From positions 1-12,274 of the forward strand of contig NW_021826652.1 in assembly GCF_006345805.1 (NCBI RefSeq): 12,274 nucleotides of DNA. The letters run 5' to 3'. The position numbers and the translations under genes were made by a program. Positions 9,968 to 12,274 of the stretch are shown piece after piece (position 1 is the first letter of the stretch; each line of letters begins with the position of its first letter). The stretch is from Octopus sinensis. Lineage: Eukaryota. Below the pieces are notes generated by a model, which did no database searches, had not been told where the DNA came from, and was given only the letters and a program-made list of their open reading frames with translations.

Positions 9968-10245
9968 CGGACCGGGCTGCGTATTGTGTTCTTGAGCAAG
10001 GCACTTTATTTCACGTTGCTTCAGTTCACTCAGCTGTAGAAATGAGTTGCGACGTCACAGGTGCCAAGCTGTATCGACCTTTGTCTTTCCCTTGGATAAC
10101 ACTGGTGGCGTGGAGAGGGGAGGCTGGTATGCATGGGCGACTGCTGGTCTTCCATAAACAACCTCGCCCGGACTTGTGTCTAGGAGGGTAACTTTCTAGG
10201 TGCAATCCCATGGTCATTCATGACCGAAGGGGGTCTTTACCCTTT
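9968..10245 (+). mobile_element. SINE copy 1, 5'-truncated (lacks tRNA head)
   Basis: Begins at CGGACCGGGC just after the B-box position and runs to CTTTACCCTTT. Confidence 0.9.
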
Positions 10246-10324
10246 ATATATATATATATATATATATATATATACATATATATATATATATATATATATA
10301 TATATATATTATACATACATATAT

Positions 10325-10528
10325 GTGGAAATGAGTTGTGACGTCACTGGTGCCAAGCTGTATCGACCTTTGTCTTTCTTGGATAACACTGGTGGCGTGG
10401 AGAGGGGAGGCTGGTATGCATGGGCGACTGCTGTTTTCCATAAACAACCTTGCCCGGACTTGTGTCTAGGAGGGTAACTTTAGGTGCAATCCCATGGCAT
10501 TCATGACCGAAGGGGGTCTTTACCCTTT
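10325..10528 (+). mobile_element. SINE copy 2, 5'-truncated, with four small deletions
   Basis: Begins at TGTGGAAATGAG (end of the CORE-like domain) and runs to CTTTACCCTTT. Confidence 0.9.
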
Positions 10529-10643
10529 ATATATATATATATATATATATATATATATATAATATAAATATATATATATATATATATATATATATATATA
10601 TATATATATATATATATATATATATATATATATATATATTATA

Positions 10644-10986
10644 CACAGGTGCATGGCTCAGTGGTTAGAGCGTCGAGCTTACGATCGTGAGGTTGTGAGC
10701 TCGAATCCCGGACCGGGCTGCGTGTTGTGTTCTCGAGCAAGGCACTTTATTTCACGTTGCTTCAGTTCACTCAGCTGTAGAAATGAGTTGCGATGTCACT
10801 GGTGCCAAGCTGTATCGACCTTTGTCTTTCCCTTGGATAACACCGGTGGCGTGGAGAGGAGAGGCTGGTATGCATGGGCGACTGCTGCTCTTCCATAAAC
10901 AACCTTGCCCGGACTTGTGTCTAGGAGGGTAACTTTCTAGGTGCAATCCCATGGTCATTCATGACCGAAGGGGGTCTTTACCCTTT
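10644..10986 (+). mobile_element. SINE copy 3, full 343-bp unit (tRNA-derived head, CORE-like domain, stem-loop tail)
   Basis: A box TGGCTCAGTGG, D-stem GCTC/GAGC and variant B box GCTCGAATCC. The central GTGTTCTCGAGCAAGGCACTTTA...CAGTTCACTCAGCTGTAGAAATGAG resembles the CORE domain (cf. MIR GTGACCTTGGGCAAGTCACTTAA...CAGTTTCCTCATCTGTAAAATGG). Confidence 0.88.
10654..10708 (+). promoter_or_regulatory. Internal type-2 Pol III promoter of SINE copy 3 (A box 10654-10664, variant B box 10699-10708); equivalent sites in copies 4-6
   Basis: The A box matches the tRNA consensus. The B box reads GCTCGAATCC instead of GTTCGAATCC, so activity is uncertain. Confidence 0.65.
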
Positions 10987-11042
10987 ATATATAATATATA
11001 TATATATATTATATATAATATATATATATATATATATATATA

Positions 11043-11385
11043 CACAGGTGCATGGCTCAGTGGTTAGAGCGTCGAGCTTACGATCGTGAGGTTGTGAGCT
11101 CGAATCCCGGACCGGGCTGCGTGTTGTGTTCTCGAGCAAGGCACTTTATTTCACGTTGCTTCAGTTCACTCAGCTGTAGAAATGAGTTGCGACGTCACAG
11201 GTGCCAAGCTGTATCGACCTTTGTCTTTCCCTTGGATAACACTGGTGGCGTGGAGAGGGGAGGCTGGTATGCATGGGCGACTGCTGGTTTTCCATAAACA
11301 ACCTTGCCCGGACTTGTGTCTAGGAGGGTAACTTTCTAGGTGCAATCCCATGGTCATTCATGACCGAAGGGGGTCTTTACCCTTT
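11043..11385 (+). mobile_element. SINE copy 4, full 343-bp unit
   Basis: Same boundaries as copy 3, with 6 substitutions relative to it. Confidence 0.88.
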
Positions 11386-11547
11386 ATATATATATATATA
11401 TATATATATATATAATATATATATATATATATATATATATATATATATATATATATATATATATATAATATATATATATATATATATATATATATATAAT
11501 ATATATATATATATATATATATATATATATATATATATATATATATA

Positions 11548-11890
11548 CACAGGTGCTTGGCTCAGTGGTTAGAGCGTCGAGCTTACGATCGTGAGGTTGT
11601 GAGCTCGAATCCCGGACGGGGCTGCGTGTTGTGTTCTCGAGCAAGGCACTTTATTTCACGTTGCTTCAGTTCACTCAGCTGTAGAAATGAGTTGCGACGT
11701 CACAGGTGCCAAGCTGTATCGACCTTTGTCTTTCCCTTGGATAACACTGGTGGCGTGGAGAGGGGAGGCTGGTATGCATGGGCGACTGCTGGTTTTCCAT
11801 AAACAACCTTGCCCGGACTTGTGTCTAGGAGGGTAACTTTCTAGGTGCAATCCCATGGTCATTCATGACCGAAGGGGGTCTTTACCCTTT
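11548..11890 (+). mobile_element. SINE copy 5, full 343-bp unit
   Basis: Same boundaries, with 2 substitutions relative to copy 4. Confidence 0.88.
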
Positions 11891-11942
11891 ATATATATAT
11901 ATTATATATATATATATATATATATATATATATATATATATA

Positions 11943-12274
11943 CACAGGTGCATGGCTCAGTGGTTAGAGCGTCGAGCTTACGATCGTGAGGTTGTGAGCT
12001 CGAATCCCGGACCGGGCTGCGTGTTGTGTTCTCGAGCAAGGCACTTTATTTCACGTTGCTTCAGTTCACTCAGCTGTAGAAATGAGTTGCGACGTCACAG
12101 GTGCCAAGCTGTATCGACCTTTGTCTTTCCCTTGGATAACACTGGTGGCGTGAAGAGGGGAGGCTGGTATGCATGGGCGACTGCTGGTCTTCCATAAACA
12201 ACCTCGCCCGGACTTGTGTCTAGGAGGGTAACTTTCTAGCTGCAATCCCATGGTCATTCATGACCGAAGGGGGT
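11943..12274 (+). mobile_element. SINE copy 6, cut by the window edge
   Basis: Same 5' boundary, with 4 substitutions relative to copy 4 over the visible 332 bp. Confidence 0.88.

Follow-up and report, generated by a model that had tools for sequence, protein, structure and literature searches.

A (TA)n-spaced local array of a young tRNA-derived SINE on an unplaced contig of Octopus sinensis

The window analyzed here is the whole of contig C3123, an unplaced contig of 12,274 bp in the Octopus sinensis assembly (2.72 Gb in 13,516 contigs). By direct reading of the sequence and by alignments, we found that positions 9968-12274 of this window contain six copies of a SINE, all on the plus strand. 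The interpretation that we favor, and consider probable, is that copies 3 to 6, and probably copy 2, derive from local DNA-level duplication of a unit made of the SINE and its TA tract. Copy 1 arrived separately, and the tandem arrangement was encountered at this locus only.

The array begins with copy 1 (9968-10245), which is 5'-truncated (unit ~66-343, the first ~65 nt being absent) and is followed by a degenerate (TA)n spacer of 78 bp (10246-10323). Copy 2 (10324-10528) is also 5'-truncated, covering unit ~133-343 without the first ~132 nt; it differs from the unit by four small deletions and precedes a (TA)n spacer of 115 bp (10529-10643). Copies 3 (10644-10986), 4 (11043-11385) and 5 (11548-11890) are complete, with a length of 343 bp, and are followed by (TA)n spacers of 56 bp (10987-11042), 162 bp (11386-11547) and 52 bp (11891-11942), respectively. 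Copy 3 displays the rare CAC-AGGTGC head, and copy 4, which has 3' hairpins, was taken as the reference unit. Copy 6 (11943-12274) is cut at 332 bp by the end of the contig, beyond which the array may continue. The spacers are nearly pure (TA)n. The four intact heads begin (TA)n-CACAGGTGC, and CTTTACCCTTT-(AT)n terminates the five tails that are visible. Compared to copy 4, copy 3 carries six substitutions, copy 5 two and copy 6 four, with no indels, and pairwise distances among the array units range from 2 to 8. Tandem periods of 399 and 395 with a 97% match were reported by TRF. The sequence thus confirms the description given in an earlier note on this DNA, namely, six copies in the same orientation, identical boundaries in the intact heads, three complete copies of 343 bp, divergence of copies 3, 5 and 6 from copy 4 by 2 to 6 substitutions, and spacers of 52 to 162 bp.

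We identified the repeat as a tRNA-derived SINE that is young and highly abundant. That it is a SINE, as already proposed in that note, was upheld by target-site duplications, by the A and B boxes and by the thousands of copies dispersed in the genome. The A box TGGCTCAGTGG lies at unit positions 11-21 and fits TRGCNNAGTGG, while the B box AGCTCGAATCC, at about positions 56-66, matches GGTTCGAATCC at 9 of 11 positions; in older copies of the family, the B box reads GTTCGATTCC. The spacing between the two boxes is tRNA-like, as in an internal Pol III promoter. No tRNA, and hence no cloverleaf, was detected by ARAGORN in the unit, and Rfam (E<=1) returned no tRNA, no hammerhead of the kind looked for in a retrozyme and no other real family, but only low-complexity TA noise. 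The head of the SINE folds as a long hairpin. Loss of the tRNA cloverleaf is usual for derived SINE heads.

Regarding the size and age of the family, the genome contains 2,122 exact matches to the standard 29-nt head (TGAAGGCGCATGG...), and the 27 best genome matches to copy 4 are 98-99% identical to it. A sample of 60 copies, collected along chromosome C1 with the exact standard head as sole criterion, showed 81-98% identity to copy 4. These two sets also allowed us to reassess a non-consensus B box and a CTCGAG motif that had been pointed out as features of the array. Indeed, GCTCGAATCC and CTCGAGCAAG are present in the array and copy 1 differs, harboring CTTGAGCAAG in place of CTCGAGCAAG, but neither feature is specific to the array. 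The B-box variant was found in 27/27 near copies and is a marker of the family, and CTCGAGCAAG is a marker of a young subfamily, a C at unit position 91 being present in 25/27 near copies and in 5/60 sampled copies. CORE-SINEs have in common a central domain of ~60 bp, and unit positions ~88-150 seem to resemble the MIR core, with about two thirds of the positions identical. The octopus CORE-SINE is OR1 according to PMC4824008 and OR2 according to PMC4758252. The CORE-type label given in the earlier note draws on this resemblance and on these two papers, and is putative. A search of literature full text gave no match to four sequence strings of our SINE. We also observed two types of 3' end in the family. 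Young copies of the C1 sample finish ...GGGGGTCTTTACCCTT(T), with ragged ends, and older C1 copies (85-95% identical to copy 4) finish ...GGGGGTCT followed by CAGA, CCGA or CAGCAG, often in (GTAT)n, (GT)n or (ATT)n. A change of tail, or of partner, in the history of the family is suggested by these two types.

The SINE family inserts preferentially in (TA)n. A (TA)>=4 stretch was found within 34 nt of an end for 24/60 sampled copies (40%), compared to 24/240 control windows (10%) taken 170-250 nt away from the sampled copies (OR 4.5, p = 3e-5). Such stretches were present on both sides of 16 of the 60 copies, and among the 27 nearest copies, about 18 have TA flanks. The earlier note had offered targeting of (TA)n as an alternative to local amplification; at the level of the family, it is true, and the element behaves as a microsatellite-preferring retroelement. 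Copies outside simple repeats are bordered by target-site duplications of 9-15 bp, most of which begin with A or T and are immediately preceded by a T (for example, ACTGTTCCGTG, ACTGGTACA and TATTAAGACTTT). Their ends are ragged (...GTCTT, ...GTCTTTA or ...CCCTT(T)), with no tail of their own. Because of these duplications and ragged tail-less ends, the SINE can be said to move by LINE-driven target-primed reverse transcription. We also considered that the SINE might bring its own (TA)n tail and in this way renew its target, and rejected this since copies at non-TA sites lack a TA tail: in those with non-TA duplications, the duplication immediately follows ...CCCTT(T). The TA tracts therefore belong to the target DNA and are able to act as flanking direct repeats. 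From this mode of insertion we infer a LINE partner, which stays a candidate. No orphan SINE tail devoid of a SINE body was found among about 120 loci, and the LINE fragment at window 1-1113 has nothing in common with the SINE. Separately, two young SINE copies were observed in head-to-head arrangement, separated by 3 bp, at C2:68248347-68248996, and two same-strand SINE tails lie 773 bp apart on C10 (42788307 and 42789080). Both pairs are possible double hits in one TA tract.

Three properties shared by copies 3 to 6 argue for their local duplication, namely, a rare 5' junction, rare internal variants and a single orientation. All four intact array heads read ATACAC-AGGTGC-ATGG, the usual form being (G)TGA-AGGCGC-ATGG. 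The exact 29-mer starting with CACAGGTGC has five matches in the genome, three of which are in the array, and the head of copy 5 is one further base off. When searched with its TA prefix and up to two mismatches, the junction ATACACAGGTGC was recovered in the four array copies and once only elsewhere in 2.7 Gb, on C5863; dropping the TA prefix and searching with the 20-mer brought in just a few further copies, old and diverged. Copy 2 has a 5' junction that occurs a single time in the genome. As for the internal variants, a T at unit position 119 is present in copy 1 and copies 3 to 6, that is, in all array copies that can be assessed at this site, and in 5/87 dispersed copies. A T at position 247 is shared by copies 2, 4 and 5 and found in 2/87 dispersed copies, copies 3 and 6 keeping the ancestral C. 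Since (TA)n is strand-symmetric, six independent insertions would share one orientation with a probability of about 1/32.

We computed a maximum-likelihood tree of 94 copies from which the head columns had been removed. Copies 2, 4 and 5 form a supported clade (98/85), and all six array copies fall within one 12-row group. Holding the six together improved the likelihood by 9.5 over that of the tree from the free search (p-AU 0.68).

The rare head itself calls for caution. The CACAGGTGCATGG head is also found at C4:82981499, in a copy that belongs to an older subfamily and has a non-TA flank, and in the 3'-truncated C5863 copy, which weakens the case for co-duplicated flank DNA, and the head may have been transmitted through RNA rather than copied as flanking DNA. 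The T of the array head is a CpG transition that recurs elsewhere. Additionally, the array head perfectly matches a 9-mer inside the SINE (unit 153-161), which is also the exact truncation point of the C5863 copy. In that contig (3122-6150), we observed part of a SINE that has the rare head and is truncated at the internal CAC(A/T)GGTGC motif; together with ~110 bp of (TA)n, it lies between two copies of a ~75-bp flank. The C5863 locus is thus a complex duplication and no simple insertion.

Local amplification, as first put forward for the array, is the best explanation for copies 3 to 6, and probably for copy 2, on account of their junction, variants and orientation, but it does not extend to copy 1. 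The latter is an independent 5'-truncated retrotransposition at a non-TA site, outside the amplification, because it has its own 12-bp duplication, its site is empty in paralogues and sister contigs carry it without the array. Its 5' target-site duplication, AAGTTGACTTAT, is located at 9940-9951 on the plus strand, and the same 12-mer recurs 3' of copy 1 in contigs C10570 and C9927. In the paralogues, the empty site reads ...GTAAGTTGAC(A/T)TATAAACC..., with the 12-mer present once only. The sister contig C10570, whose flank is 99% identical and whose copy 1 is one base different, shows the 12-bp duplication on both sides of copy 1, then normal flank and no array. Similarly, C9927 harbors the same copy 1 and the same 3' duplication, followed by unique flank and no array. 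Only in C3123 do (TA)n and copies 2 to 6 start exactly after the last T of copy 1. This start conflicts with the two sister contigs, so that it must have come about by a chimeric join or by ectopic recombination within the SINE. Moreover, a C at unit position 263 is common to copies 6 and 1 and found in 6/87 dispersed copies, which hints that these two copies exchanged sequence or that polishing caused cross-talk.

The 5' junction of copy 1 also contains a 17-nt filler (9952-9968, plus strand) that is an inverted copy of the flank at 9921-9937 and is absent from the empty-site paralogues. The two segments form a perfect 17-bp inverted repeat, or hairpin, for which Rfam gave weak miRNA-like noise. 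We noticed a similar inverted filler, made of SINE head, at the 5' junction of a copy at C1:24.76 Mb. In C9927 (30898-33930), a wholly different sequence is found directly upstream of the truncated 5' end of copy 1, along with several 1-nt deletions; this region is a paralogue that has been rearranged, or else the contig is poor or chimeric.

The sequence to the left of copy 1, window 1741-9952, is a unit of a segmental-duplication family with 91-96% identity among its copies, of which at least four are on C5 (38.73, 38.99, 115.55 and 115.76 Mb) and others on more than eight unplaced contigs. C10570 is 99% identical to this unit but lacks window 4223-6931. Within it, positions 5647-6319 and 8605-9367 are two copies of another repeat of ~700 bp (74-87% identity), each containing internal tandem units of 61-67 bp (TRF 5818-5973). 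Further left, at window 1-1184, the 3' fragment of a LINE ends at an (AAT)23 microsatellite (1114-1184). The open reading frame at 237-659 has a weak zf-RVT match (PF13966), and 92-97% identical copies of this stretch are present on many chromosomes. This fragment may represent another microsatellite-associated LINE.

We then considered the genome as a whole. A DNA query made of tail, spacer and head gave full-length matches only inside C3123. None of the 87 sampled copies with flanks had a same-strand neighbor within 1 kb, and among the first 100 heads listed, there was no same-strand pair closer than 10 kb. What we describe is a local array, found once on a small unplaced contig, and no genome-wide satellite. 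The term SINE-microsatellite composite satellite, used in the earlier note, is thus too strong: satellite DNA forms long head-to-tail arrays, usually at several loci, and here neither a second tail-(TA)n-head junction nor, among the copies sampled, any tandem neighbor was found.

Repeated independent insertions into one (TA)n tract, with the heads homogenized later by gene conversion, would bring the copies together without any duplication. The clear preference of the family for (TA)n speaks in favor of such a scenario, and so does copy 1, which is demonstrably independent. Furthermore, the truncation points of copies 1 and 2 differ, as retrotransposition gives, and the pairs on C2 (68248347) and C10 look like double hits. 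We nevertheless judge it very unlikely, because four of four heads carry a rare junction that is found once elsewhere in 2.7 Gb. It would also leave unexplained why the rare T247 and T119 are held in common and why a strand-symmetric target received one orientation, at a time when 0/87 sampled copies and 0/100 listed heads have a same-strand neighbor within 1 kb, and gene conversion is an extra assumption. A rolling-circle burst from an extrachromosomal circle of SINE plus TA, re-integrated and followed by drift of the spacer lengths, is in our opinion equally hard to credit. It does yield same-orientation units with identical boundaries, (TA)n mutates fast enough to generate spacers of 52-162 bp, and re-integration could account for an array abutting the unrelated copy 1. 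But the units are nested rather than star-like (T247 in copies 2, 4 and 5, the ancestral C in copies 3 and 6, distances of 2 to 8), neither a circle junction nor a hammerhead or retrozyme motif was found (Rfam), and nothing requires a circle, so that this reading fits less well than stepwise duplication.

Another concern is that the contig could be chimeric or wrongly called in its consensus, the real units being fewer or placed elsewhere. The array runs off the end of a 12-kb unplaced contig, which is small and stops inside a repeat, and the sister contigs lack the array at the same copy 1. In addition, the uncorrected 1-nt deletions and the different left flank of copy 1 in C9927 point to poor small contigs in this region, and copy 2 has its four small deletions. 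Missed-adapter artifacts yield inverted, not direct, repeats, and the array is direct. Copies 3 to 6 differ by discrete substitutions only, without indels, and the five units span 2 kb, less than one long read, which makes a chain of false joins unlikely. The junction of copy 2 and the rare head are unique, and mis-mapping across the family would be unable to create them; a chimeric join inside copy 1 would relocate the array, not abolish it. Because of the indel-free units, the discrete substitutions, the 2-kb span and the unique junctions, we judge that the array itself is real, and an assembly artifact appears unlikely to us. On the evidence of the contig sequences, the junction between copy 1 and the array may still be chimeric, and short-read polishing could have blurred the per-site variants in such near-identical repeats.

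Returning to local duplication of a SINE plus TA unit, we infer the exchange mechanism and the order of events as follows. Target-primed reverse transcription by the LINE machinery, with nicking that would favor T|A steps and so account for the enrichment in (TA)n, would have placed one full-length copy in or beside a long (TA)n tract. At the 5' junction, this tract would have been interrupted by CAC, and in the copy, a CpG among the first bases would have undergone a C-to-T change. The flanking TA tracts could then have served as direct repeats for mis-pairing, and mis-aligned exchange or replication slippage would have duplicated SINE and TA stepwise, up to at least four full units (copies 3 to 6), leaving spacers of different lengths. 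Copy 2 is probably a deletion derivative of one unit. Copy 1 would be separate and older, its contact with the array being secondary, by ectopic recombination inside the SINE or by a chimeric contig join. Stepwise duplication between TA tracts is expected to produce identical boundaries, variable spacers and nested variants. A bolder version, which we regard as doubtful but worth keeping in mind, is that this is a real satellite at birth, present in one haplotype or paralogue only. In that case, the SINE and its target microsatellite would form a composite unit of 400-500 bp that grows by unequal exchange and has recombined with copy 1.

In octopus, the tRNA-derived SINEs OK, OR1 and OR2 were reportedly described by Ohshima and Okada in 1994. 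Our SINE resembles them in its tRNA-like head with A and B boxes, its length of about 340 bp and its very high copy number. Compared to these families, the subfamily seen here is very young (near copies 98-99% identical). SINEs represent 11.6% of the genome of O. vulgaris, where many recent "unclassified SINE" insertions were reported and where Dong-R4 and L1-Tx1 are among the recently active LINEs (PMC13282606). With the microsatellite-targeting non-LTR elements, our family shares an enrichment of insertions in a simple repeat, here (TA)n (40% versus 10%). Unlike in these elements, the preference is not a strict one, the majority of copies being located outside TA tracts, with ordinary 9-15-bp duplications. 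Among such elements, Dong in (TAA)n, Kibi and Koshi in (TC)n/(TTC)n, and Waldo and Mino are said to have been covered by Kojima and Fujiwara in 2004. Microsatellite-associated SINE/RTE families are also mentioned for Lepidoptera in the passage of PMC9115989 that refers to Tay et al. 2010.

Tandem families derived from SINEs include Hy/Pol III of Hydromantes salamanders and Xenopus satellite 1, according to a table in PMC9659126, and TRIM and Cassandra tandem arrays arose by unequal crossing-over between terminal repeats (PMC4528315, PMC7215508). In all of these, as in the array presented here, a dispersed retroelement gave rise to head-to-tail arrays by DNA-level recombination. However, those systems form long arrays genome-wide, whereas here there is one locus of 5-6 units. 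In addition, the whole SINE is the unit here and the microsatellite supplies the flanking homology, while in TRIM and Cassandra, the homology is borne by the element.

Overall, our finding is a local instance of known processes, with no new class of element and no new satellite family. It offers a small, clean example of how microsatellite instability can turn a dispersed element that prefers microsatellites into a tandem repeat. If the locus were a nascent satellite, it would tie the target choice of a retrotransposon directly to how tandem DNA originates and how structural variation arises in octopus genomes. More generally, among the young SINEs of this genome, the most common one is biased to (TA)n, which matters for the design of microsatellite markers and for assembly, as contigs break at such sites.
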